From: Styela clava
Lineage: Eukaryota
Direction: 5' to 3'
Assembly (NCBI RefSeq): GCF_964204865.1
Contig: NC_135254.1
Location: forward strand, 17,236,001 to 17,300,000
DNA length: 64,000 nucleotides
Part shown: piece by piece, positions 1 to 40,800 of the stretch
Layout: the number at the start of each line of letters is the position of its first letter
Position numbering within the stretch: the first letter of the stretch is position 1
Translations under genes and position numbers: made by a program
Notes under the pieces: model-generated
The model's database searches: none
What the model was told of the DNA's origin: nothing
The model's input: the letters and a program-made list of their open reading frames with translations, nothing else

Positions 1-1316
1 TTGTAGAAACCTTCATATCAATAGCATATACCTCAAAGGTGCATTTTCTCCCAGTGAGCCGTTTGTTATGTGGTTCTTCAATTTATTACATATCTTCAGT
101 ATATTTGCTCGTTTTGTGAAACAACATATGTTACCAGCTATATAGCTATGTATACTTACAAGAATATGTGAAGAGACAAATGTCTGAAGAGTCAATATTT
201 ACAAAAAGCGATAAGTATCTCGAATAACCCTGAAAAAGTTGTATATATAGATATATATAATTACTAACTCTGGAGATAAAACGTTGAAATTAGTTTATTT
301 TCCTTGTGTGACATATAATGGTTGCTGATTTGAAACATAATAATGCAATTTTACGTTGCGACGTTGTATTGAAAAACTCATGTGCATAACATGATATCAT
401 AGTGACTCTGTGTACACTTTTGTAACCAAATATTAAATATTATCGGATATATGAATAAACAATTATTAATTATCCAGTTACGATTTTTATTCGTCGAGGG
501 GAATTCGACACTGAATTCTGTGATGTCAGGGTTCGGGTTAGCGAACGCGCGTTACTCAAAACATGGCGAGTGCTCTATCTACAGTGCTTAAAACGTGGCA
601 TGTGGTTTTTCCTCACGCCACACATTTTTTCACTAGTGACGAGGTTTTCTACAAAAGATCAGTGGGGTCATTGTCATATTGCACTTGAAACTAACATATT
701 TTTACAGTCTTTTTTTTCGAATTTGATTTCAGTCGTGATAGAGGAAACAGCGAATCGGGAATAAATCTGATATCACTAGATTGACCAATATAATCAGTAT
801 CATTTTTGACAACACCCGCAACACTTCGAAACTTTTAATTAGCTCAAGTTGTTTTTGTTGTTGAAGCTCTCTGAATTCGGATTAAGAAAATAGGTCAATT
901 CTTCAACACACATTGTTTGTTCTTAATTTGTCCTACTTGTCTTAGTGTAGTCAAACAACATCTGGAACATAATATGAGCTGCTTTTAAGCAGATAAATGA
1001 AGAAAACAGGGCAGATTCGGCAATATAATGGAACAATCTGGCATTGAGGAGACTTTTCTCGCCAAGTCCCAGTTTACAACGTTGAATGTGGTAGGTACTG
1101 ATTTGTAATTTATTTAAAACCATTTACTTAAACTTACAGTCAACTTTTCGCAATATTATAAACCTATTATGCGTTTGCTGCAACTTGTCTTGTATTCAAA
1201 TGTTCTTTTCATATTAATTATCTCTTTTTCGAAATAATATGTCAGAAAACTTCGTATATATACAATTAATGTGAGGCATAATCCAGTATTGGATATATCA
1301 GGAATATCAGGAAAAT

Positions 1317-2816
1317 ATGATGATAATCCGGCTCTTATTAATTTTCGTCGTGTTGCATGTTGTTCAAAGGTTAGTCTTAGTTAAAGTTGTATTTTATTAT
1401 ATATATAGAGAGTTTTTAATTCCTCAGAATTTATATACATGCAAACTATAGCAGGATGAGGGCCATGACTTATTCCATCGTTTCATATTCGGTACGATTA
1501 TTTCACAAAGACATGGGTATGTTTGTTGTTCAAAAGACGCGGCTGTCTTTAATCTTGCACTATGAGACTCGCAATTGACTTTTAATGATTCGGACAATAA
1601 TTCCTATGCTATTCATTTGAGTAAAGTCGATCAAATGTGAATTATTTCCAATTAACTTGTGTTTAGTAAAGTATATATACAAAAATATTTAGGTTATCAA
1701 AAAAATAATAGATAATGCAAATTCTATTCAATTCCCTAGTTAAAGATAATACATGGTGTCCATAAAATCCCTTCACAATTTCATTTTGTTTTGAAGTCAG
1801 TACTTAATATGTCTCAGCCAGGTATGTTGTTTTTTATTCAGTAATTGTGTAAGTATTTCCACTTCATTTAATACATCGGTGAAGGCCAAAACAATATATG
1901 ATATCGATAAATTGTACCTTGCCTTGTCATTCAGTTATCCGAGAGCAGCTTTGCCCAAATCGACACTAACACTTACAGCACTACGTAACGCCTCCTTTGG
2001 TTTTCCATTCACCAATTGCTGCAACGCTGTATAGGCCTTCCCAGGCGTCGTGTCTTTAAATGGCTTTATGATTTCTCCAACAGTGTTAATCCCTTCTTTG
2101 CAATTTTGAAAGGTTTTAACACTTCATGGACATTAGTTATATTAGGATATTAGTTATGCTATCCAAATAAACTTGATATGTAACATGTCATCTTACATTT
2201 AGTGCTCCGATGGAAGAGAACAGACCGGGTCCTCCCGCAGGTAATATGCCTAAATTTTATTTTTATCGATATTCAATTTTACAGATGTAATCTTGGAAAG
2301 AGCGCGTTGCGCCTAGCTGACATTGGTTTATCATGAGAAACATTACTAAAATACATTTAGGTTTGTACAAAGCAAGCGTTTTACCAGGAGTAAATTGAAT
2401 GCAAAAAAGACGCTGGAGTTGAATTATTTTTTTAATTTTTGGTTATAAATGTCTTTGTAACGATTTTTCGATATTCATTCGTATCCATTTGGTTTTAAAT
2501 ATTGCATCAAAAATAAAAAGTCTTTCCTATTTAAAAAAAAATCACAAACAAATAATTTTTTATAACAGAACTTCGAATTGACCTTGGCAAGAAACTTAGG
2601 GATTGGGGGGAAAAGGCTGTCAACTTCGGCAAAAAAACTTTCGAATTAGTCAAAGAAGGGATTAACACTGTTGGAGAAATCATAAAGCCATTTAAAGACA
2701 CGACGCCTGGGAAGGCCTATACAGCGTTGCAGCAATTGGTGAATGGAAAACCAAAGGAGGCGTTACGTAGTGCTGTAAGTGTTAGTGTCGATTTGGGCAA
2801 AGCTGCTCTCGGATAA
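1317..2816 (+). CDS. Secreted cationic amphipathic peptide precursor (antimicrobial-peptide-like), 112 aa; exons 1317-1369, 2203-2240, 2569-2816
   Basis: GT-AG introns with compatible phases (2, 1). The spliced protein is MMIIRLLLIFVVLHVVQS-APMEENRPGPPAELR-IDLGKKLRDWGEKAVNFGKKTFELVKEGINTVGEIIKPFKDTTPGKAYTALQQLVNGKPKEALRSAVSVSVDLGKAALG*. It has a hydrophobic signal peptide, a short pro-piece ending in R, a Lys-rich Cys-free helical region and a terminal Gly. Confidence 0.8.
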
Positions 2817-2836
2817 CTGAATGACAAGGCAAGGTA
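1915..2836. repeat. 186-bp inverted repeat: arm 1915-2100 is the reverse complement of 2651-2836 (550-bp spacer)
   Basis: By-eye comparison of taccttgccttgtcattcag...gttaatcccttctttg with caaagaagggattaac...ctgaatgacaaggcaaggta; no mismatch seen. Confidence 0.95.
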
Positions 2837-5217
2837 AATTATTTTACGATTTTTCCATTCTGAATTTTATTGTTACCGTTCCAGCTGTTCTATCATTGAA
2901 GGTGGTACAGCAAATCTATGTTCATCCATTCATAGCAAAAACAAAAATTGAACAGCTTAGAAAAGTTTTGCATACTGAAGTTATCAAAAAAGAACCTAAA
3001 CACGTGAATTAATTTTTTTTTAAAATTACAACAAATATTTATTATGAACGACACACAACAACAAGTCACAAAGCATGCAAATTTAAAAACCAGTTACTAT
3101 CCAGGTAACAAATAGGCAGCAGAAAAATTGCTTTTTTCTCGAATCATTTATCAAATTAATTTCAATAACTAAATTAAATACAATGCACTGTCTCCTGTGT
3201 CTTGAATTGTTGCTCCGAAGGAGTTCAACTTCGAACTTTTGTAATCCTTTATTATCAATCAACACGTGGATACCCAATGTTTTAAGTCTCCATGTAAGAC
3301 AGTCTAACGAAATATAATCCTAGATTGATAGAATTTACTTTGTATGTCTAACTAAAATATGATGTAGAAGCATCACCATTATGTCACTTAGTCCAACCCG
3401 AGTCCAATTAACTCTTGTTGCTAATCGCATTACTTGAGTACAATGCCTGACTGCTCTATATAGTATAGAGGCTTATTCTATTCCCATATCGTTAGCTTAG
3501 CAAATCCCATTTCCATGAGTATTCCTGTACAATGTTAATACACAATTCTTCCAATATGATCCTGTATCTTTTCTGGCAAACTTCGATTTATATCGCTGCC
3601 CCACTAGGCATATCACTGCTGGCTAATTCAATTCAAATGTGCAAAGATCGTTGATGTATTGAGTTTTTGTTAAATTGCAGATGACAGAAGACGACAGGAA
3701 AATCAAATTGAAACTGACGATGCAGGAACCACTTCCAACAATTTTTAATACTTATTTCTGTGTACGGCATTCATACGTCGCTAAGTGACAAAATAGAAAG
3801 CTAACTGTAATACCACTTGAAACGTGATTTCGCGACTTTTGGCTAGTGACTTTAGGAATAAAAATTACTGTGGGTGTATGAGTTTCGATGTATTCAATGG
3901 GCTTTTGCATTATATCAATTATGGGTTTTCTGTCTATTCTTGTAGCGGGTCAAATACCAAGTTTTTATACTACAACTAGACGTTAAAAATAAATGAGTTG
4001 TTTCGTGATCAAAACAAATTTTTAAACCGGTACGTTTTCCAAACAAATTACTTTCGAAGAATTCACATTTTTTTGCATTTGCACTTTTGCTGATATGACT
4101 TCAGTTTGTTTTTTTGCACCTTGTATAAACATAAAAAAAAAACAAATGTAATTTCCATGTAAATAAATCAAGTTAAAATAGTTTTCATTGTTTTCAGTTA
4201 TCGTGAACATGGAATATTTTAACGTAGCAAAATGTATAGTAAATGTTACCATAACTATCAGTAAAGGTTACGCGAGACTAACTCCCAATCCTTCCTCAAT
4301 GCCTTTCCACTAGAAGATCCATATGCGTATAATGCAAGGATGCTGTAGCTAAAAAAAAATACCATATATTGCAATTCAAGAGTCCTGCTGCACACTAATA
4401 CAAATGTATTTCTGAAACGTTCCGTCTGACCAAAATTCCGCCTGACCTCATGTAGACAAGCATTTTTTCTTCTGTGTGTCATGCAGCAGGAGTCTTGAAT
4501 TGCATAGAATTTTAACATAGGTGTTATTTGGTGAATTTTGAATGTAAAACTATTTTACTAATTCAATTGCGTGCTAATCGAAACGGAAGGGGCGTTGTTG
4601 ACTCCAAAGCGCTGGTGTAAAAGTACTAAGTTTAAATACCAAAACAATAAAGAAAATTGGTTATATTGTCATATATTGAAATCGTGGCGATGAGAATACA
4701 ATTGTAAGGGTGTTAACGGGACTGTGTCATAGTTTGGCATTTTACTCTGAAGTTGTGTTATATACTCCCGGGAGTCAAAATTCTGATCTTTCACCGAAAG
4801 CGAAGGAAACGAAGTCTATTGAGCGTGCTCAACAGTCTATCAATAGAGAATTGCATACACCACAGCCCTTTTGGTTAAGAAATTTGATGAAAGTATATAA
4901 CAGAACTAAGGATACTTATATCTGAGAAAGTTACCGGCGAGCACTCAAAATTTAAACATTCTGTTTTTTTTACATGGTCTTGACATATTATGTTCACTAA
5001 CGTATCTTCTAAATTCATACTGCTGTATTCTAATTATATCTACTTGTAGTCAGATTGCGCCTAATGTCATCGTGGCCAAAACCAGCCTGAAGCACGCTGT
5101 TTTAGTTTAGCGTGACGTTTTAGAACTGAATGTTCGCCATTACCATTCCAAAACGAAGGCCCAGGCCATCTTACTGCGTAATCATTACATCTTTAGTTCA
5201 TTACACTGTAATGAACT

Positions 5218-20069: not shown

Positions 20070-22033
20070 CATCCCTCTCTATTTTTGGACACGTTAGTGG
20101 ACATAACGATCGTTTCAATATTATGTTGCTGTTGTTCTTTGACACTTTTCGGACACCTAGTGGAACTCTATTAAGTCGCTTTCTTTTTGATTTCTGTACC
20201 AATTGCGCTGAAATTTTCTGTGGTTGAAGATAAATTTTTCTTTAGAAGGCTATTACTTTCATTTATTTAAAATATTCCTGATAGCACTGTAGGATTCGTT
20301 TTTTTGACACGTAATGAATTTAATTTTATGCTGGCACTCTTCGTGCTCATCGAACGTCGGTGGTGTGTAACAGAATGCTTGCTTTGCTAAGCCGTAGGTA
20401 CCGATAGCGTCAAAGGTAAGGACTGCTTCGCTCTGAATAACGTGTCCATATATTTGAGTATTGCTCTCTTGTTTACAAATATTATGATGTCGAGTTTTGG
20501 GGTGGCACGACATTTTATTAGAGCTTTGAGTTTCTTAAAGCGTTTTTAAATTCATTTCCAATCTACTTGGGTGATTTGCATAGGTAACTTGCCTGTAACC
20601 AAAATTTCGTATTTTACTTAATTTGAAAATTTATTTATGACGACCTAATATACGCCTGAAGTACCTATTATGGCACGGACTATAGTCTTATGGCGTCATT
20701 GAAAAGAAGGGACTCCTAAGTTCCATAGCCCAAGAACTCTCATGGGATGACCGAACATTTTAAATCCAGCCCTGCCTATAAGGCTCAAAGTGAATTTTGG
20801 AAAATCAAAATAATAGCCTTCTGGCGGCTTCACCTATTAGAAAATTCGAAAACAATTGTGCCAATAGTATCCGAGCAGAAGCGATTTTCCCCGACAAAGT
20901 GATCAGTAATTTATTTTCCCATCATACTAAAGTACACATTATGAGTACACAATAAAACAAGAGAGCAATGCTCAAATATACGGACACGTTAATCTGAGCG
21001 AAGCAGTCAATTCCTTTGACGCTACCGGTACCTACGGAGCTATTCGCCATTCCCCATTAGCAAAAATTTTGTTGCACACCACCGACGTTCGATGAGCACG
21101 TGATCAAAAGAACAACAAGAAGAGTGCCAGCATTTACCCACTGAAAAATTCAGAGCAATCGGTCCCGTCTTCTAAGAGAAAAGCGACTTTTTAGGTTTTT
21201 CACTAGGTGTCCAAAAAGTGACAAAGAACAACAACAACATAATATTGAAACGATCGTTATGTCCACCAACGTGTCCGAAAATAGGTAATGTGGTACTTCA
21301 GGGTGAAGAAAAGCGCGAGACACCAAGACTGGTTATCTATTTATGTACTATTGTAGTATTATTTTTTTATTTTATTTTTTCATAGTGTTCAAATGATGTA
21401 CTAATTGATTCTCATATATAGGCTCATTTAGAATTAAATATCTATTTCGGAAACGCACTACTCTTTTTCTACCATTAAATTAATTTAAAACAAAAACCAC
21501 ATTATGTTACTGTTATAAATGTGTCATTTTTCACAATAAATTCCCAACCCTGATTAGATGAATTCAAAATTTATCCTCGTTTTAATCAGATTTATCCTCG
21601 TTTTGTAAATAGTGTAAATGGTTCTCTATAAACTGAGAGTTAAATAAAAAAGAACCTGTGTCAATTTATGTATCTAATCATGTGTTGTATTGGGTGGTAA
21701 CTGACTCAGATGACCGTAACTGGTCGTATCGTTACCTCCCAGTCATACCGAAAACTTTTGTTTCACTTATTGGACACGTTTATTGGACACGTTTAGTGGC
21801 CATAACGATCGTTTCAAAATTTTGTTGTTATTCTATTGTTATTTGTCTCCGTCTCCATTTTTAAAAAATCGCTTTTCTCTTCGAATACTGGACCAATTGC
21901 TTGATATTTTCAGTGGTTAAAGATAAAATTTTTCTCCAGAAGGCTATTACTTTTTTTTTCGCTATGACGTCATCAAAATTATTGCCACTGGGTGGCGCTA
22001 CGTGTCCATATATTTGAGCATAGCTCTCTTGTT
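20070..22033. repeat. Cluster of three copies of an unclassified interspersed repeat (about 20070-20470, 20958-21282 inverted, 21770-22033); a further copy at about 49228-49408
   Basis: Shared blocks ggacacgttagtggacataacgatcgtttcaa, aaatcgcttttctcttcgaatactggaccaattgc and gtgtccatatatttgagcatagctctcttgt. Confidence 0.8.
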
Positions 22034-28800: not shown

Positions 28801-31800
28801 AAAATATATATCGCAATAATCTGCAAACATGAAATGCCTGGTAATATAGCCAGGTTGTAGATAGAAGTTATTTCATTGTTTATTGTATGAAAATTCCTTC
28901 ATACACTCAGATTCTATTACTGGATTTTATTTTCGAAGTATTCGAAATTTCATATTCGAAAATAATAATTTCGAATGTATTCGAAATAGTGAACTATTCG
29001 GTATTGGCCATCCCTGCCTGCAATATCATCATGGTTGAGCTTAGTGCCTCAACCTCCAGGCCAAGGCACCCACTCTTTTTCCATTTTATACTACATTTTT
29101 AAGTTATGGGTTACTATTTTAAAAGTGAAAATTAAGTCTTACAGTTTATGCAGTAATAAAAGCCTCACAATTTTTTAATTTAGGAAAATGGGCTGGGACA
29201 AAATGTTGACAGCATTCTTTCATCGGAGTCTTCACCATTGTCGGAAAATTGTGATTTTGTTGATGAACTTCTACAAGATTTATTACAAAATCAATCGTCT
29301 TCTCAACAAAATATTATTACAGGTCAGATTGTGATTGACGTATAGGGTGACTGAACCCAGGTCATTTGGAACATATTCTAGAAAGAACATAACTTCTGTG
29401 CAAAGAAAGTTCAGAAATTTAATGAAGGAATTTTCAACCATACTGTATGGTCTCAATTGCTAGTTTTGAACATACTTGACAAGCTGACTTGCTTGAGATA
29501 TACCTCGAACACAATATTATCTCTATAACTGACATGGTCAAACTACGGCCCGCAGGCCAAATCTGGCCTGTCGGGTAATTCAATCTGGCCCGCCAGATGC
29601 TGCCACAACCAAACTAAAACCAAATTTTGATGTTTTAGCGGAAAATAACTCAAGGAATTTTTTGATTTTGCGATTAAATTTAGTTTTCGCATGAGGCTTA
29701 TTGTTTTCCACTTTTTCTTTTGTAACACTGTAAACATTGTTCATAAAATATAACTTTTATGTCACACTTACATGGCCCACCAGTCTAGATGGGCAAATTT
29801 TATGGCCCCGGGTCCAAAAACTTTACCTATCCCTGCTCTACAACATGGTCACATTTTATATTCTTTATAATTCAGATGATATTCTTCTCCAACAAGTCAC
29901 TTCGGGTGATGTAGGAACGAGGAGGTACTCAACTCATACTTCCTCCTCATCTGCCTACTCTTCTTGCTCTGACTCGGGCACTCCATCACCAACTGATCAG
30001 TTTTCTGATCACGGTTCTTGCTCATCAATAGACTTTCAAGACCATGATGTTATAAATTCAACTGTCATCGAATCTGATACTCTATTGATGAAAAAGACTC
30101 CCTTGCCTGTGAAGGCAATTTCTAAACCAAATTTAGTAAATCCAAAATTGAGTCAAAGTAAACGCAACTCAAAGACAGTGGATTGTATTAAAAAACTACA
30201 AGAAACTGACTTGGATAAAGCTGTTCGGCTCGCATGTGAGGAAACAAACAGACTTTTGCGTTTACATAGGTCGGTATCAAACGGCCAAACCGAATCCCCT
30301 GTCTCTTCGCCTCTTAATAACGATGGAAATGGGGTCAAAACAACAGAGAACAAACCTGAAAATGATCTTCTAAAAAGTTTATGTGAAGAAACTATTCTCG
30401 ATAATTCAGTGTCTCAGAAGAAAAATCGCAAAATCAAAGTTACAGGTACATTACCAGGTCAGTAACTCTCAAAATCTGTGTTAATAATGAAAATTGATAT
30501 TTGTTCAGGCCACCAAGATTCAATTCAAATGCTTTTAATTTAACAAGTTGTGGAATAGAATAGTTGTTAAGAGATGTTTCTAAATGTATGTTTGCATATT
30601 TATGGCTCATAAACATTTTGTGAGTTATCCATCAACAGTTTTTAATAATAGCACCGTATTTGAATGAATATCTCTAATATTGAATGAAATAAGAAACTTT
30701 ATGTAAATTTTATAAAAAAAAGCAGTAGTTTTAAAAAAAATTTAACAAAGTAGAAAAAACTATTATGAACAGCATTGAATTAAATTTGGTTGGATGGCAA
30801 CTCTTCAACCATTAACTGTAAACACTTCTATCGGTACCAGGTTAGGGTTAGGCCATAATTTTATTCCGATTTTTTTTATTATAGTTCTATTACGTGGTGT
30901 GGGACTGTCTGTGATAGCCAAGTGAATATATATCCCTGCCCATTGGCTCTCGTCCCTTCACACAACTTGATGTAAAATAGGCAAACAAAATTAGTTACCT
31001 CCATATTGGTACACACACTTCTGGAGTGCTCTTCTATTAATAAATCACAAAAATATTTAAAGTACCGGTAATTGAAAATGTGTTTCATGCCAATTTACAC
31101 ACTTTTATCAATCAATAAACCTAGCATGTTTTTGAATTTTCAGACAATCATCCGAATTCTACTAAACCACAAAAAAGAAAAGCAAGCAGTCTTCAGAATG
31201 CAATTGACAGGTTATATTCTGCTAACAAGACAATGTGCCTGAGTTCACAATTGTCAAGTCAGCCAACGCCATTCAACCGTTCAGCATTGTTAAATAATCT
31301 AAATGGTAAGTAAGTGAGGGATATTTATGTGCGAGAGGATTGCTGGACTCCTCGCTGTTGGTAGGGTAGTTTACATAATGACTGGTTAATTACGGCTTCC
31401 TCCACCATTTGGTCTATGCATCTAAAACAAATAATTAGCTAACAATGCACATACCTGGATGGACACAAATGGACTGGTAACAGCACGAGAGGCTGTGGTT
31501 CGGCATATAATTAAACTGCCTTGTCGCTTTCCTATAAATCCTATCCTATCTCAAGTTGATAATTGAAGTTTGGAAAGGTACAGTACTTACTTACTTGTCT
31601 ATCAAAGACAGCTTGTACTACTCATCCATCAGGTTACTGTAATTTGAAATTTCACTTTTGCCCCTACATATACTTCAATTGCTATTTCTGATATTGTTTT
31701 ATCGACTATTTCTAGGTAATTCACAATCACATGTTACAAAGCCTGTGCAATTAGAATCCATCAATATAGGATCGAAGGAGTCGTGTTTTATTGTGAGTTT

Positions 31801-34800
31801 TGTATTTAAAAGCATTTTATCTTAATTAATAGAAACTCAATTGCAGTGAAAAGGCTCCGAATGATTTGTAAATTTTTATCATTTTTAGGTTTTTTATTAT
31901 ATCATATTTTTCGTCAATAACCTTTTTCAAGATCATATATGATGAAAGTACTTCATATGACTTTGAGTGTAAACTATGACCAAAAAGCTGTTTCATTGTT
32001 TCAGACTCAAATTTATCATAATTTTATTGAAGTTGAATGAAAATATTTTTTTGCCCTTGTTAAACAATATTAGTACATACCAAATTTGTGAATAGATTAA
32101 AATTTCTGGTAGATCAGAGAACAAAGTGAATTTTATTGTCCAAATCTAAAAATCTTTATATTGTAATTTATAGAACTCTATAGTAAAGTAGTGTGGACCA
32201 AAAAAATCCATGAATTTCTCAATTCTTTGAAAATGAAGAAATTTTACTCCACAAAAATTGTGTATTAAAAGTTTTCAGTATACTTAGAGTTAAGCTTTTT
32301 CTGGATTATGTTTTAAATGACCTAGGTTCTTGTTTGGGCGCTCCAAAAGTGTGTGTACCAATATGGAGGTAACTAATTTTGTTCGCTTATTTCACATCAA
32401 GTTGTGTAAAGGGACTGAAACCTATGGGCAGGGGGATATTTACAGGACTAACACAGACAGTCCCCGAACTCGTAATAGAACCAAAATAAGGAAAATCTGA
32501 ATAAAATTATGGCTTAACTCTAACCTGGTACACATACTACGGTAGTACTTTTTAAATGACCTGGGTTCTTGTTTTTGCGGTATCTTATACTTTCTAATTT
32601 TTCAAATACTTCTGCCAGGTATCTCAACCTTCGCAACCACCAACAACACAGAAAATTACATTAGAAGGGGTCAACGGTCAACAAACTTACACGCTCACCC
32701 CCACAACACCCCCAACAGCCGCCCCAATTCAAGTCTACATCAAGCAAGAATCACCCACATATCAATCAGCTCCATTAGTCAACGGATTTATTCAATCATC
32801 TCCACAAAGTGTTTTATCTAATCAGAAGGTAAAATATAGTCGGCCATGTTTTAACTTAATACCGTAACAGTATCTTGGATGCAATACGGCTCAGTTAGGT
32901 TTCTGTATCGTTAATAAGTGTTTCATTCATGTTTATATACCTTATATATCTTCTTTTTATTAAATACTTTGAGTGGGTATCAATCCTTCAATCTCTATTC
33001 GTTCTATCCCCTTTTTATTTTTTTTTGTTGGCTTCGTTATTGGTTAATAGAAGTTGAGCATTCTTTAATCAATTTTACATCAAGAATTTAGATTTAGGTA
33101 TATTATGTCACTTTTATTTTTTTTACACTTTTACTATTTTTACATTGTCTTCATGATGTCAACCATCATAACTGAATTCTAGATAATCCATCTATCTGAT
33201 TATGGATTTCCATAATTCTTTTTTCAATTGATTATTCGAAAGGGAATTATATTATGATTTATTTTTCAGGTGTACGTTACAACAGGTTCAAATTCTAATG
33301 TTACGTCAGCTCCATGCATATCCATTGTTAAACCTGAACAATTGTTATGTAACAATGGACAAACAATCGTTATACAGCAACCTCAACAACAATCTTCTTT
33401 ACTAAAACCAGTGAATATATCAAACATGAAACCAGGTTGGGATTTTGTTTTATGAATTCTTGACTAATTTTTTGGTCACACACGCTTACTCAGGGATTAG
33501 GGAGATTGATCTTTGAGCACAATTACAGGCGTCCACGAAAATTCCAGGAGCTACTAGAACTATAGGGGATTTATTATAGAATCGCACATTAGTATATACA
33601 AATTAATGCAAGATTTTTAGTGATGGCCTAGAACTGTGTAACTCTCATGCTTACCACCTCACTCAGGGATCAATAAACCACCTCACTCAGGGTTCAATAA
33701 ACCACCTCACTCAGGGTACAATAAATTGGGTAGGCAATGCCGAACCAACAAGATTTTTCCTGTCCTCCGAAATATATTAACTTCTTGGGTATTCAGGAGG
33801 GCTCGTATACAGCCGTGTTTGGAGCAAACGGTGTGAAATAAGGGCCAATGAAAATTGTTAATTCCACTGCAAAAATGGCGCAACTAGAAAAAGGGGGCTC
33901 CCGAAGTATGCGAACCAAGATGGCGGACATCGGAATGTAATATGTGTACTAGGTTAGGGTTAGGCCATAATTTTAGGTATAAATACTACGGGAGGCTCTT
34001 GGCTAGTCTTCGAACTGATAATAGGACTAAAATAAGGAAAATTGGAAAAAAATTATGGCCTAACCCTAACCTGTTACCCATGTTACGTTCCGATGTCCGC
34101 CATCTTGGTTTGCATACCTCGGGAGCACCAGAAAAAGACATTTAATTTTCTGAGTTTGAAATACCTAATTGAGTGAATTTCAATTTTTTCCTCAATTTGT
34201 TTCCTTGGGCCTTTCCATCTTAAAATAATTTAATTAATTTAATTGTGGATTCATTTCAGTTGTACTTTTACCACATTCTCAGGTACAGAACCTATGCTGC
34301 TTTCCCAGTCTGATTTATCACGCTTGGCTGCTCAAGGTGTCATCAAATTTCCGACCAAAAAAGTTGAACGGAATTTAATGCCGGTTTCTGATGAAAGTAA
34401 AGTGCAATTAAAAAGTAAGTTTGGACATTTTTAATGTTAAATAAAGTGGAATTTATATTGTTCTTAGCATGGCTATTATTTGGACTATAATATGTATTCA
34501 AAAAGTAGATTATTCAATTTTGGCCATTTTTGGTCATAACTTAATTTAGTCAATGCACTTTGAATTAATTTACAGGGGAATCGAAATCATTGTCACAAAC
34601 ATCCAAAGCTATCACTCCTACAGTATGTGATATACTTCCATCAGAAGCAGCAGGAATTATTAACGGTACTTCAGTGTTTGTGCATGGTACAAACAATCAA
34701 CCACAACGTGGAGAATTAGATGTAAGTGTGTTAATTTTATTAACATATATCTTTATGGAAAGGTAATAAATTATAGACAAAATTCCTCTTCGATTTAAGC

Positions 34801-37800
34801 TTATATAATATATATTGTGTTTTTCTCTTTAGGTAAAAGCACTAAAACGTCATCAGCGAATGATTAAAAACAGAGCTTCTGCTTGTGAGTCAAGGCAAAG
34901 ACGAAAAGAGGTAAAATGGATGAATTCTATAATCTGTATAGCATGTTATTTTTACACATTGTTGGTAATTTTTTTGGCGCTTTAGAAGTGTGTGTACCAA
35001 TATGGAAGTAACTAATTTTGTTCGCCTACTTTATGTCGAGTTGTATAAAGGGGCTGCTATTGTATAAAGCCCCTTTATGGGATATATTCACTTGGCTAAC
35101 ACAAACAGTCCCAAACTCGTAATAGAACTAAAATAAGGAAAATCGATAAATATAATTATGGCCTAATCCTAACCTGGTACACACACTACGGGAGTACCTT
35201 TTTTATATTATGTGTTATCCTACACGACCATTCATAAAACAGTGCATTTTTTATAATCCTTCAGTATCTGAAAACATTAGAAGACCAAGTTTCTGAAGTA
35301 GCTGAAGAAAACAAAGGTCTCAGAGAAGAAAATAACTGTCTTAAAGCAAGGCTTAGAGAATTGGAAATCGAGGTGGGTTGTGTTTTAACTAGAATTTTCT
35401 CGTTGTATATGAATATTCATAGTTTTTAAATGTTTTATGTTATGTTACAGAACCAGAATCTGAGGAATATCATCAATATAACACAATCAAAACAAAAGAA
35501 AGCTGCTTGTTTATTAATGCTCATGCTATTTATTGGAATTAATTTCTCTCCTATTGGGTAAGCTACTATGGGTAATAGTTTTTTTATGCAAGCGTTTCGT
35601 GTCTTCAATCTGAACAAGGTACTATGCAAGAGACCATTGTTTCTGAGGGATCTCTGGCTGAAACTCATGCCCAGTACTCACCCATGGTATCCCAAATTTG
35701 GGTTGGTAATGCCAAAACTGGAGAGATGCCAATTCTTACTCACATGGTATGTATCAGTGCCTTGTTAATAATATGAAGGCCTGAACACTATAATATTTAT
35801 GAATCTTATATGTCTTATGTGTTTTGTAATCTTAGCAGGTTAGACTCAAAAAATATTAATATTGAGATATGCCTGAATATATTTGTCAGTAAGTTGAAAT
35901 ATTTTATTCGGATAGACTACTCTGCTTGGCAAACTTAGGATATGATTTTCTTGTTTATCCAAGTAAATGTATGCCCTTCGGGCATCCTGCGAGGGGCGAC
36001 AGGGTTCTTGAATGTCTTGGATGATCAAGCCGTGAATGTTTTCTGACGTGCAGTCCGCTACCTATCACCACCCCTTCAGCACTGTCGTGACCCTCCAAGA
36101 ACAGTCATTTCAGTTCAAAGTGTATCAGCGTCGATTTGTCGGAACAAATAAATTGCCAGTCGATCATGTGGAAGCATTTGTCCATTCTGGGTTTACCAGG
36201 CATTCATTTCATGGCAGGTACCATTTTGTTTATCTATATTTATTATGAATTTCAGGTTGTTTGGAAATTCTGACGAGACCAATAATGATCCGTTTGTTGG
36301 AAGTTATCCCAGTAATGGTTTAGCTATGCCAGTATCTGGCCAAAGTTCTGTTCGATCTGGAAGGCATTTATTATCAATATTAAATGATAACGACGATAGC
36401 GGTAACAATAATTCGGTGAAAATGAGCAAAGCAACATCAAATCGCAATAAGATTAAAGCGGATGATAAAAGTTTAATTTCCTCCAAAACAGAAAGTTATT
36501 GGATGGATGATCTTGTCCAAGAATATAAAAACAAACACCTTGAAAAGTAAGAAATTATTTTTTTTGTTCAAAGCTATTATGAATTCAACCATTTTGTTAA
36601 CCTTAAATTAATTTTAATTGAAAGCCAGCTGATTTATTTTGAAAGTAATGTATCTTACAATATAATACAGAAATACATTTATGTTATTGTGCAGCAGCAC
36701 TCTTGGATTGCATTGTATTAACCAAATAGATTTTAAAATCAATCGTCCACATAGCTATTCTTTCATAGAATATTCTAAATATCGTAGTTCATATTGTCTC
36801 TGACAATGTGTTTGTCTACGCAAAATTTCTATCATCGGTTAGTCTTTGGACCAGTGGTTCTCAAACTTTTTAACTTGCGCCCCCTTTTTTAGAAATTGTC
36901 GAGTCTCGCGTCCCACCTCAAAAATAACTAACTAACAATAAGCTACAATCAAAAAGCACGTTGAAAATACGTGGATGGAACGTAAATATCCAAAATAAAA
37001 AAATGTAAATATCTAAAATAAGGCAGGCAAGATCAAATCTAACAAATATTTTTATTTTTAATTAGCTTCAAGCCCTCTCAAAAAATTGTCTAAGCCCACC
37101 CCTCTTGTGCGGCGTGCCCTATCGTATGATAACCACTGCTTTGGACCATATTCATTATCATTTTGCATACTTTCTAGTTGATGAGATGAATGGGCTCAGT
37201 TTTTTGATTGTTAACTAATAATAATAAGTTCAAATGTTCACTAAATATTCAAAAATTTGGCTCAACTCTGTTGGTAGATAATCTCTATTAGCTCTTTTCT
37301 CATTGTTTTAGTTTTCTTCGTCTTTTGAGTGAAACAACGTCAAACTCAGTGAAACGTATGTTGAGAAGAAAACTGAAAGAAGAATTAGGAATCTCTATTC
37401 CTTTACCTGTTCCACGACATAGAAGGATATCATACACTCGTAAGTTAATATTGATTTATTATATCAAACACATACCAGACAACAGTGAATGAATTATATT
37501 ATGAGCAGTCACTAGTGGATGATCATTTAGGCATGTTAGGTTCTTGATTTTCATTACTGTTAACATTCTATTGAATTAATTTATACCAATGAATTTTCTT
37601 TTTTCGAGATAGAAAATGGCTATTACACTATATTGAGATATAAAAATCGATTTGGGAATCAAGATGATTATTGTCTAAATATACAAATATGCCATCCTGG
37701 ATATTTTATTCATGTATATGTTCTAGGCCAGTGGTTCTCAAACCGTGCAGCAAAGAGAACTATTTGACAGGGCGTGAAGCTAAATAAAAATAAAAATATT

Positions 37801-40800
37801 TCTTAGAATTGATCTCGCTCGCCTTATTTTGGATATTTACATTTCTTTATGCTTTAGGGATTGCGATTCCATCCACGTATTTTCAACATGTTTTTTGAAT
37901 GAATCATACTTTCGCCTTAATATCTGTTATCTGTAGCTTATTGCTGGAACCACCGTTCCAGGTTATTAAAATATTCCATATCGAATAAATAGCCTGACAC
38001 AATAATAATAGATAGGTCTATTTAAAGAAGAAGAAAAAACAATTTTAACATTTTTCCTTCACAAAGTTTCAAATGTAAATGATTTCAAGTACTCGGTAAG
38101 CTACATCTGTATATTTGTCTTCAATGCTTTACTGCTATACTGAAATGAAAGTTCTTATGTTTAACGATTTTTATAGCTCGTGTTGCGAAACAAAGAGCAG
38201 ACAGAAACACCATGGCGAAGTCAACCATAAAATCAACAAATGAGAAGGTATTGTAACTTTAATGGCGTCTTTTTTTCTAAAAAATGTAAGAAATCAGAAT
38301 AAGACGGAATGTCGGAGATTAATTAAAAATATTCAACAAAAATTTTTTTTTAAATTCAATTTTATCTAATTTTATGAAGTTTATTTTAGCCTATACAATA
38401 ATTTTTGGATTTTTTTTCATGCTTGACAAATTTATTATCCATTAATTGAATTACACCGAGATAATTTCAAAATATTGTAACGGTCTTACTTGGGTATATG
38501 TAGTATACTGGAAATCATTTCTGTATCGGGTATATTGCGAACATCTAATATACCACAGCTATAGCTGGTATTCAGAATGATTGTCTTAGGTGCACAGGTT
38601 ATTTAACAGTTTCCTATTTACTAAGCATCCTTCCTTGTCTTGCGGGTACAGGATCTCATCATACTATGACACAGGAAGTTTTATAATATGAATGTTCATT
38701 CATAATTGTATCTATTATTCAAGCTTGGTTTATATAAAATTCACACCCAGGAATTGCCAAAATGAATTAATCTGCGATCCTGAAAATATAGAGTATCCAG
38801 AAAGTCTTGAAAAAAAACAATTGCAAAGGGAATTTATCAATACCTTTTATTGTTTTGGCCCTCACAGATGTATTGAATGAAGTAAAAATACTTAAACAAT
38901 TACTGATTAAAAAACAACAAACCTGGTTAAGATATATTAGGAACTGACTTTATAACAATATTGAAATTGTAAAAGGACTTTATGTGGCCCCTTTATTATG
39001 GAAATGGAATATCGCATATTTTTCAATATTTGACAAATTCCCAACATTCACGATGCTGATTCTATATTTTATTTTCGTAATAGAACGACCTTACTTCAAG
39101 TATATCTCCTATCATGAGGGGTGAGATGAAGATGCCAACATCTTGGCCTCAACCCTGCGAACAACCTCATGTTCAAGACCAATCTCCCGCGCTCAATGAG
39201 ACCGAAACCATCAGGTATGAGGGAGTGATCGTATGATTGCCAATATACTATTATACTTAACTAACAATAACTTTTTTCATTTCTGAAATAAGATTTAAAA
39301 TCTATTTCAAATGAAGGGGATATCATATGACATCTTTTCATTTATCTCAGTGGAAATGAAAGCCAATTAGACAGCCTAATCGTACAGTCAGACATGAGAA
39401 TTTTTTCCAATTAATCGTTTCAAATTCGTAAATAAATTATTAGATGGTAGAGGAAGCAATAAGTGAACAGATGTCCTATCCAGATGATCCAACCCATACA
39501 GCAGGGAGTACTGCAATCTTTGCACACATATCCTTTCCTTGCAGAAGTCGCCTATTTAGTTCCACAGACAGTAAAATTCAGAACTAGACTGGATAGGATT
39601 TACAAATTTATCCCAGGGGAGAGGAGGGAAGGTGATAAGTCGGCTTAATCATATGGCTGACCACCGCCTCTCGTACGGTTACCAGTCCTTGCCGAGTATG
39701 GGATTAATTGACCAGGTATTTGTTTCCAGATTCATGCGTGGTAACAGTTGAATGGTCAAATGCTAATATATACATGAATTTGTAGTTATGCTTTGTTCGG
39801 TTATAATTAAATCAAACTCTGAACAATCGGCAATGGATTTTGAAAGCCACATAAAATGTATAGTTGAATTCTAAAACTTTATTTAAACTTTTAAAAAATA
39901 TATAGATCTTGGAAAGCAATTATGAGCTCTGGTAAATAATATAACAGTTTCAATTGTTAGGATTTACCATATCTATGATTTTTAACCAGATACAAATAGT
40001 TATAATATATCATACCTCACAGGGTTCATTCAGACACATGGAAATACCCTTGCTGTTATAAGTTGTTTTCTAGTCATTGTCATCTGTTTATTATTTTAAT
40101 ATCTTATTTGATTTTTGTTTGTAGAGTCAATGATGATTTAACTCAATGGGCCAAACGATATTCTGTTGACAGACAAGAGAAAGCACAAAAGAAAGCCCAA
40201 ACCAAAAAGGTGACTTTTCTAATTCTAACTATGATTGATTTAATTCTGAATAACGCCATAGTATTTGATCTCATATTTTGTCTTTTCCTCAAGAAAATTG
40301 TTACTTTGAATCATTTTTGGCATAATAAAATTTTGATTAAATTTCACTGTAAATGTTTTTAAGGTAATCAATTTTAATCAATTTTTCTTTCTATATTCCT
40401 TGTTCCCTTGCAGATACATGTTATATTTATTGCAGCTAACTTCTAGTAAATTGTACTGTCATTATTATTATCACCTAACATTATTCTTACCTTCTAGCTG
40501 GTGGAGAAAAAAGTTAGAAATACCAAATCACCATCTTCTAGATATGACGACTTTGAAAAGTAAGTAGAGTGTCCTTTGAGAAATGTACTGCCTGCTTGTC
40601 ATGATTTCCATGTATGTTGTTTAGTTTTTATTCTGCATTCTGCATTTTCGAACCAAACATGGCCACTGATTTGTACCACTCTTCAATGCTCTGAAATCTT
40701 TCCAGTTGGACATGGCCGACAGTGGGATTTTGACTCGAAATATTGAAACTGCAGTGCCTATATAAGTATTTCAATTCTCGTCAACCACAGGCAATCATTC

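Follow-up and report, generated by a model that had tools for sequence, protein, structure and literature searches.

A recent, polymorphic and probably repair-derived inverted insertion makes a coding exon of Styela clava one half of a predicted pre-mRNA hairpin

INTRODUCTION

Pairs of inverted repeats lying in introns, inverted Alus for example, drive A-to-I editing or back-splicing. Inverted copies of coding sequence have been described as a source of new regulatory RNAs as well: de novo hairpin RNAs (hpRNAs) of Drosophila derive from inverted exon fragments of their targets, sometimes beside the progenitor gene (PMC10317233), and an inverted-duplication origin is known for plant MIR genes (PMC10292708). 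Some insertions made during DNA repair are also inverted copies of nearby sequence. In yeast, such fold-back insertions begin at inverted microhomology, are extended by Pol-delta synthesis and are captured by NHEJ or alt-EJ at 0–5 bp of microhomology; most of them are 5–34 bp long, with a 41-nt spacer (PMC11724301). Snap-back SD-MMEJ is a model for templated insertion at double-strand breaks (PMC2943611), and replication template switching (FoSTeS/MMBIR) would leave the same scar (PMC8421209).

Here we describe a locus of Styela clava in which part of a coding exon and its antisense copy in an upstream intron form a long, perfect inverted repeat. By origin, as far as its junctions and empty site can be read, it is a member of the known class of templated inverted insertions; in its potential function it would resemble the de novo hpRNAs of Drosophila. 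All positions refer to the window, that is, the whole stretch of 64,000 nt that was analysed.

RESULTS

The host gene encodes a short, apparently orphan peptide

We aligned contigs from public sequencing runs to positions 1000–4000 of the window and obtained a gene model in which all joints are of the plus-strand GT..AG type (Table 1). The coding sequence comprises 339 nt (112 aa), and the translation of its last exon is 100% identical to the NCBI entry 'uncharacterized protein LOC144422891 isoform X2 [Styela clava]' (P0001, 96 aa). The original prediction, made from the letters of the window, had proposed a signal-peptide exon, a small exon 2, an exon 3 and a donor at 2834, all of which the RNA contigs bear out. 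Two details had to be adjusted: the stop codon, correctly placed within the right arm of the repeat, occupies 2814–2816 and not 2813–2815, and the left arm, rightly assigned to intronic sequence, does not lie in intron 1, because a 5′ UTR exon ends at 1090. The intron that hosts the arm comes second in the transcript but is the first to interrupt the CDS.

Isoform X2 of the NCBI annotation (P0001, MC-APMEEN...) starts at an ATG at 1086 in the 5′ exon and skips the signal-peptide exon at 1246–1369; with 1086–1090 joined to 2203, it would yield a non-secreted form. Unlike this isoform, contig 9 of X14, an RNA contig, includes the signal-peptide exon.

The gene is very strongly expressed in X5, an RNA-like dataset (spliced contigs) from sample S2, where the exons reach a mean word depth of 1e4 to 1e5 versus 5–74 for intron contigs. 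Among the runs catalogued as RNA, none contains the stretch under study. Extreme expression across 1245–4000, again at word depths of 1e4 to 1e5, was a feature of runs X5–X8. About 14% of the words in 1245–4000 also occurred in runs whose labels name three other organisms (B, C, D).

For the protein searches, exon 3 and P0001 served as queries rather than the joined spliced protein. Pfam offered no family for the peptide, the species' own protein was the only match in a search of 5.8 billion proteins, and no paralogs came to light when the entire genome was searched in six frames (E ≤ 1). A full HMMER scan returned three weak matches (E 3e-5 to 2e-4): two are long repetitive proteins and probably spurious, and the third is an unannotated 234-aa protein. 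Judging from these searches, we treat the gene as a lineage-restricted orphan.

Table 1. Features of the host gene, the MITE copy and the inverted repeat, with the three sequences that define the junctions (a slash marks a breakpoint or joint)
Feature	Positions	Strand	Evidence and remarks
5′ exon	1000–1090	+	Start unmapped; ends ...GAATGTG/GT; joint 1090/1246 in an X14 contig
Start-codon exon	1246–1369	+	ATG at 1317; hydrophobic, signal-peptide-like N-terminus; joints in X5 and X14
Intron hosting MITE and antisense arm	1370–2202	+	GT..AG, 833 nt; X5 (depth 16,815), X14
Left part of MITE copy	1749–1913	+	~86% identical to other copies; terminal inverted repeat CAGGGTGTCCATAAAGTC
Inserted segment (left arm)	1914–2093	-	Untemplated G (1914) plus antisense copy of 2658–2836
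MITE tail	2094–2139	+	End approximate: terminal repeat of this copy degraded
Small coding exon, 38 nt	2203–2240	+	X14 contig 9, X5 joints; inside hairpin loop
Intron	2241–2568	+	Loose contig end at 2240 reads first letters of exon 3
Last coding exon, 265 nt	2569–2833	+	Stop 2814–2816; contigs, joints, LOC144422891 match, frame
Right arm (donor of the copy)	2651–2836	+	Takes in 183 nt of exon 3 and the first 3 nt (GTA) of intron 2834–3680
3′ UTR intron	2834–3680	+	GT..AG; joint 2833/3681 in X5 (depth 17,868) and X14
3′ UTR exon	3681–4000	+	End unmapped, continues past 4000; X14 contig 13, X5 contigs
Recipient (arm-less allele)			...GATAAATT/TTCTTTGCAATTTTG...
Donor, reverse complement			...AAAATAATT/TACCTTGCC...GTTAATCCC/TTCTTTG/ACTAATTCG...
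Product (arm-bearing allele)			...GATAAATT-G-TACCTTGCC...GTTAATCCC-TTCTTTG-CAATTTTG...

An exon and its intronic antisense copy form a perfect inverted repeat

Direct comparison showed that 1915–2100 is the exact reverse complement of 2651–2836 (186/186 letters), as had been predicted. A repeat search extended the pair to 203 nt at 96% identity (1915–2117 and 2634–2836), with 516 nt between the two. In DNA and six-frame protein searches of the 377-Mb assembly, the arm had only two copies in the genome and is therefore not a repeat family. The expectation that it consists of host coding sequence held as well: 69% of the last coding exon, stop codon included, falls within the right arm, together with 3 nt of the real donor at 2834. 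RNA joints further confirmed that the loop contains exon 2 (38 nt, 2203–2240) and the acceptor of exon 3.

When 1880–2870 was folded as RNA, the minimum free energy was −482.6 kcal/mol, versus −224.6 ± 7.8 kcal/mol for shuffled sequences. The predicted fold places exon 2 and the exon-3 acceptor in the loop and the stop codon and the 2834 donor in the stem, the donor sitting at its base. The claim that the primary transcript can form double-stranded RNA thus agrees with RNA folding, which predicts a perfect 186-bp stem for the arm-bearing allele.

Two other identities for the repeat were considered and rejected. A long-terminal-repeat transposon spanning 1915–2836 is ruled out by the two genomic copies of the arm and by the absence of a flanking target-site duplication. 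The left arm might have been an exon of a minus-strand paralog; it holds a 62-codon open frame with neither an upstream exon nor a signal sequence in the loop, and the RNA joints, all of plus-strand GT..AG type, also oppose that reading.

Several further repeats lie in the window. At 4370–4392 and 4482–4504 there is a 23-nt inverted repeat (TGCAATTCAAGAGTCCTGCTGCA; 96% complementary, 89-nt spacer) that may represent the ends of another small MITE. Inverted pairs of 63–107 nt with 75–93% identity, located at 20079–21284, 30829–35052 and 36939–37908, are probably transposon copies in opposite orientation. None of these 63–107-nt pairs is near-perfect in the way of 1915–2100 and 2651–2836. The 3′ UTR intron contains a short low-copy repeat (3059–3121; depth ~69 vs 20 in the DNA dataset X1 described below).

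The left arm interrupts a MITE copy

Both flanks of the left arm, the left one from 1740 to 1913, belong to a family for which the genome contains at least 1,872 candidates; the 40 that were scored have 84–88% identity. In X1, which comprises four source-like DNA runs of one sample without differences from the window, depth over the element rises to 8,860, versus ~20 for single-copy sequence. Alignment of 29 copies gave a length of ~215 bp and the terminal inverted repeats CAGGGTGTCCATAAAGTC... and ...GACTTTATGGACACCCT(A)TA. The element is short and non-coding, occurs in many copies and ends in terminal inverted repeats, as a MITE does; it is probably Tc1/mariner-like, and its A/T-rich flanks suggest TA targets.

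Across the insertion point the MITE consensus is unbroken (...GATAAATT/CCCTTTGCAATTTT..., or in a longer reading ...GATAAATT/CCCTTTGCAATTTTAAAA...ATGGACACCCTATA), and the arm was present in none of the 29 copies inspected. At loci L008 and L013, a homologue of 2096–2132 (89% identity) begins within 2 nt after the MITE body. Because the tail adjoins the body at these two loci, 2094 to ~2139 is the tail of the same MITE copy that begins to the left of the arm, and 1914–2093 is foreign to it. The residual similarity at 2101–2117 had been taken for the relic of an older duplicate, which was not borne out, as these letters are MITE sequence. Likewise, the proposal of an old inverted duplicate homogenised by gene conversion is refuted by the continuous MITE consensus together with the arm-less allele described below.

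Loci L006–L034 are among the copies of the family, which also turns up in RNA contigs of X5 and X14. Loose contig ends of X1 at 1900 and 1913, which we considered as partial arms, turned out to be other, diverged MITE copies.

The assembled animal carries the arm

A 610-nt contig of X1 (depth 18.1) covers 2071–2680 without a mismatch and joins 23 arm-only letters to the MITE tail. It reaches 30 nt into each of the two arms and stops there, since a graph with k = 31 must break k − 1 letters into an inverted repeat. No arm-less joint or branch was found in the X1 contigs, and the assembled animal appears to be homozygous or hemizygous for the arm. As the contig is unbranched at full depth, the arm-bearing allele must be at least tolerated. 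The X1 contigs leave 1914–2070 and 2681–3058 bare, and the outer-left junction lies outside their cover, but such holes prove nothing. RNA contigs cover 2681–2833, a part of the second hole.

A fold-back chimera created during assembly or sequencing, in which case the animal itself would lack the arm, might account for the perfect identity of the arms and would sit comfortably with the bare stretches and the uncovered outer-left junction. Such a chimera, however, is expected as a palindrome around one point, whereas the insertion observed is clean, measures 180 nt, has microhomology at either junction and is separated from its donor by a unique spacer of 516 nt. Together with the arm-only letters joined to the MITE tail in X1, this makes an artefact very unlikely.

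The arm is polymorphic and recent

In a check of other individuals, we found an arm-less joint in both X5 and X21. Contig 16 of X5 (depth 24.6) joins 1885–1913 directly to 2094–2202 with 0 mismatches; since 2094–2200 is single-copy in the genome, the contig stems from this locus. In X21, which derives from a different sample (S18, 2026), one raw Hi-C DNA read contains the joint of 1913 to 2094 with 50 nt on the shorter side, and a ligation artefact would not reproduce that same joint. On the evidence of this one RNA contig and one DNA read, two other samples each have at least one chromosome that lacks the arm. Of the samples analysed, only that of the assembled animal is shown to carry it. 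The arm is thus polymorphic in Styela clava, a recent structural variant, and it is the arm-less allele that was found in X5, the sample with enormous expression of the gene.

Over 180 nt, copy and donor show 0 differences. For comparison, heterozygosity in S. clava is ~1.72% (PMC7540406), and X5 intron contigs differ from the window by 3–6 letters plus 4 gaps over 386–539 nt. At the polymorphic site 2765, the left arm (position 1986) has the state of the reference haplotype. Taken together, the 0/180 differences, the level of heterozygosity and the reference state at 2765 make the copy younger than the alleles now segregating. As read from its letters, the left arm is derived and very young.

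The junctions point to templated repair of a break in the MITE

Both junctions can be read (Table 1). At the inner one, the seven letters TTCTTTG (2094–2100) are common to recipient and donor and give way to imperfect similarity; through this microhomology, the identity of the left arm with the donor extends to 2100. Within 2 kb to the right of the break, TTCTTTG occurs a single time on that strand, at the inner end of the donor. The outer junction has AATT in common between recipient and donor, plus one extra G. The copy includes the GTA of intron 2834–3680, where the spliced mRNA has ATG (loose end at 2833). Because of this intronic GTA, the template was unspliced genomic DNA, and an origin from cDNA or a retro-copy, which would have the spliced continuation, is excluded.

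The locus combines an inverted copy of nearby sequence with an empty site, which both the MITE consensus and the arm-less allele reveal, a 7-nt microhomology suited to priming and a capture junction of AATT with 1 extra G. The left arm is probably a recent, still polymorphic templated inverted insertion that arose from the repair of a break in the MITE. Such an event would have begun with a DNA break inside the intronic MITE copy, between 1913 and 2094, and resection of the right-hand end over more than 740 nt. The resected 3′ end (the complement of TTCTTTG...) could then have folded back on its own strand, annealed to TTCTTTG inside exon 3, ~550 nt away, and been extended by ~180 nt, a stretch that takes in the stop codon and the first 3 nt of the next intron. 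After unwinding, the new strand would have been captured by end joining at the AATT of the left end, where one extra G would have been added; in the pre-mRNA of the resulting allele, exon 2 and the exon-3 acceptor lie between the arms of a perfect 186-bp inverted repeat. The inferred mechanism is fold-back synthesis or, alternatively, template switching during replication (MMBIR/FoSTeS type), and sequence does not tell the two pathways apart. On this reading, the chance similarity between MITE tail and exon would have caused the event rather than being its relic.

This scenario has close parallels in the repair systems introduced above. As in yeast fold-back repair, a single site has received an inverted copy of sequence from close by, with the template to the same side of the break. 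The inverted microhomology that would serve for priming adjoins the break and measures 7 nt here and 10 nt (imperfect) in yeast, and the second junction has 4 nt plus 1 extra base, in yeast 0–5 bp. The scale differs, however: the insertion is 180 nt long as opposed to the mostly 5–34 bp documented, and the spacer 550 nt as opposed to 41 nt in yeast. Moreover, what was an induced break in yeast would be a germline event here, found in the haplotype of a wild animal. Events of the FoSTeS/MMBIR type share the junction microhomology, an inverted templated segment from less than 1 kb away and the possible untemplated bases; unlike them, the present case is a single simple insertion, and the flanking DNA has no copy-number change.

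Long inverted repeats are prone to deletion. The arm could thus be ancestral and the arm-less form the result of a secondary, precise deletion of an unstable hairpin, for which TTCTTTG and AATT might in principle provide the endpoints. Yet the arm-less form restores the MITE with a letter-for-letter match to the consensus across the site, so that exactly the non-MITE letters would need to have been removed, and the zero divergence between the arms favours a recent copy. We regard this order of events as extremely improbable.

Possible effects of the hairpin on the host gene

The original prediction interpreted the hairpin as an evolved regulatory device that limits a cytotoxic peptide through Dicer-dependent endo-siRNAs, ADAR or a splicing switch, built on an old, gene-converted duplicate. 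Several observations are in keeping with such a device. A perfect 186-bp stem is predicted, with a folding energy (−482.6 vs −224.6 ± 7.8 kcal/mol) far below that of shuffled sequence; this stem would bury the stop codon and the 2834 donor and loop out exon 2 and the exon-3 acceptor. The genome encodes an ADAR-type deaminase as well as Dicer and Argonaute/Piwi domains, the gene is extremely highly expressed in X5, and inverted exon fragments of targets are what Drosophila de novo hpRNAs arise from (PMC10317233). Against this, the arm is missing from the S2 intron (X5) and from one chromosome read of S18 (X21), its position inside a MITE makes the arm-less state ancestral, and the supposed relic of older homology is MITE sequence. 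A self-limiting circuit is hence unsupported, as at least two samples lack the arm on a chromosome and one of them expresses the gene at a depth of 1e4–1e5. The idea of siRNAs acting against paralogs fares no better, since the six-frame search found none. We also found no sign of age or selection in the arm. With an insertion that is polymorphic and of zero divergence, in a gene without paralogs, an evolved circuit is highly improbable, and we infer that the variant is neutral or mildly harmful.

As to RNA editing, A>G changes were not in excess among the differences seen in RNA contigs (2/16 in X5 and 3/13 in X14); both samples are probably arm-less, so this is no real test. Nor do A>G changes cluster over the arm in these two samples; the variants there are 2656 A>G and 2765 A>T. 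The former is an allele and not an edited site, since it reaches 100% in X14, and the exon variants 2601 G>A, 2656 A>G and 2765 A>T all look like alleles rather than editing. Each of the three alters an amino acid (D>N, E>G and L>F, respectively), and two of them, although fixed in X14, have intermediate frequencies in X5. This amount of amino-acid polymorphism in exon 3 is unusually high for a short secreted peptide.

A young and unselected arm allele may nevertheless alter the output of its own gene, be it through splicing, through processing of double-stranded RNA in cis or through the excised intron acting as antisense. The exact repeat, the RNA-based gene model and the predicted 186-bp stem are compatible with such an effect, the required machinery for double-stranded RNA (ADAR-type deaminase, Dicer, Argonaute/Piwi domains) is encoded, and with arms 550 nt apart, pairing could compete with removal of the 833-nt intron. 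Co-transcriptional splicing, on the other hand, may remove the arm before the exon is made, and the apparently homozygous or hemizygous state of the assembled animal means that the allele is at least tolerated. On balance, altered output is a possibility that we hold only tentatively. Host intron and exon are both transcribed, but the intron coverage comes from X5, an RNA-like sample in which the allele is arm-less.

A narrower version of this idea, which we consider rather unlikely, is that the arm haplotype is a segregating 'proto-hpRNA' that would lower or re-route the output of the secreted-peptide gene in heterozygotes. It could do so by Dicer or ADAR processing, by a block of the 2834 donor or by antisense action of the excised intron. 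The likeness to Drosophila hpRNAs and plant MIR genes lies in an inverted coding-exon fragment of ~200 bp that makes long, perfect double-stranded RNA, here as a prediction. In the Drosophila hpRNAs, however, both arms are copies, carried by a transcript of their own that acts in trans to silence the parent, whereas in Styela clava one arm is a working exon, the other lies in the gene's own intron, and the variant is polymorphic. Dcr-2-dependent siRNAs have been shown for the former; the hairpin described here is known from sequence alone. As for paralogs repressed in trans, the genome contains no other copy of the exon or the protein (E ≤ 1), which leaves the host gene as the only possible target. 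Inverted Alus, too, are complementary segments within one pre-mRNA that flank exons and splice sites, but their arms are intronic transposon copies, whereas here one arm is coding and the pair is both perfect and unique.

DISCUSSION

The locus is a recent structural variant and not a proven regulatory device. It offers a clean natural case of a long (180 nt) templated inverted insertion in which both junctions, the empty site and the donor can all be read. The same insertion turns a coding exon into half of a predicted perfect pre-mRNA hairpin. The value of the case would rise only if arm-bearing and arm-less alleles differed in expression, splicing or small-RNA output. Were the proto-hpRNA reading true, the locus would be a junction-resolved example of the birth of a hairpin-RNA gene by fold-back repair. 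What it shows already, in a chordate relative, is how a single repair event can produce raw material for hairpin-RNA or miRNA genes.
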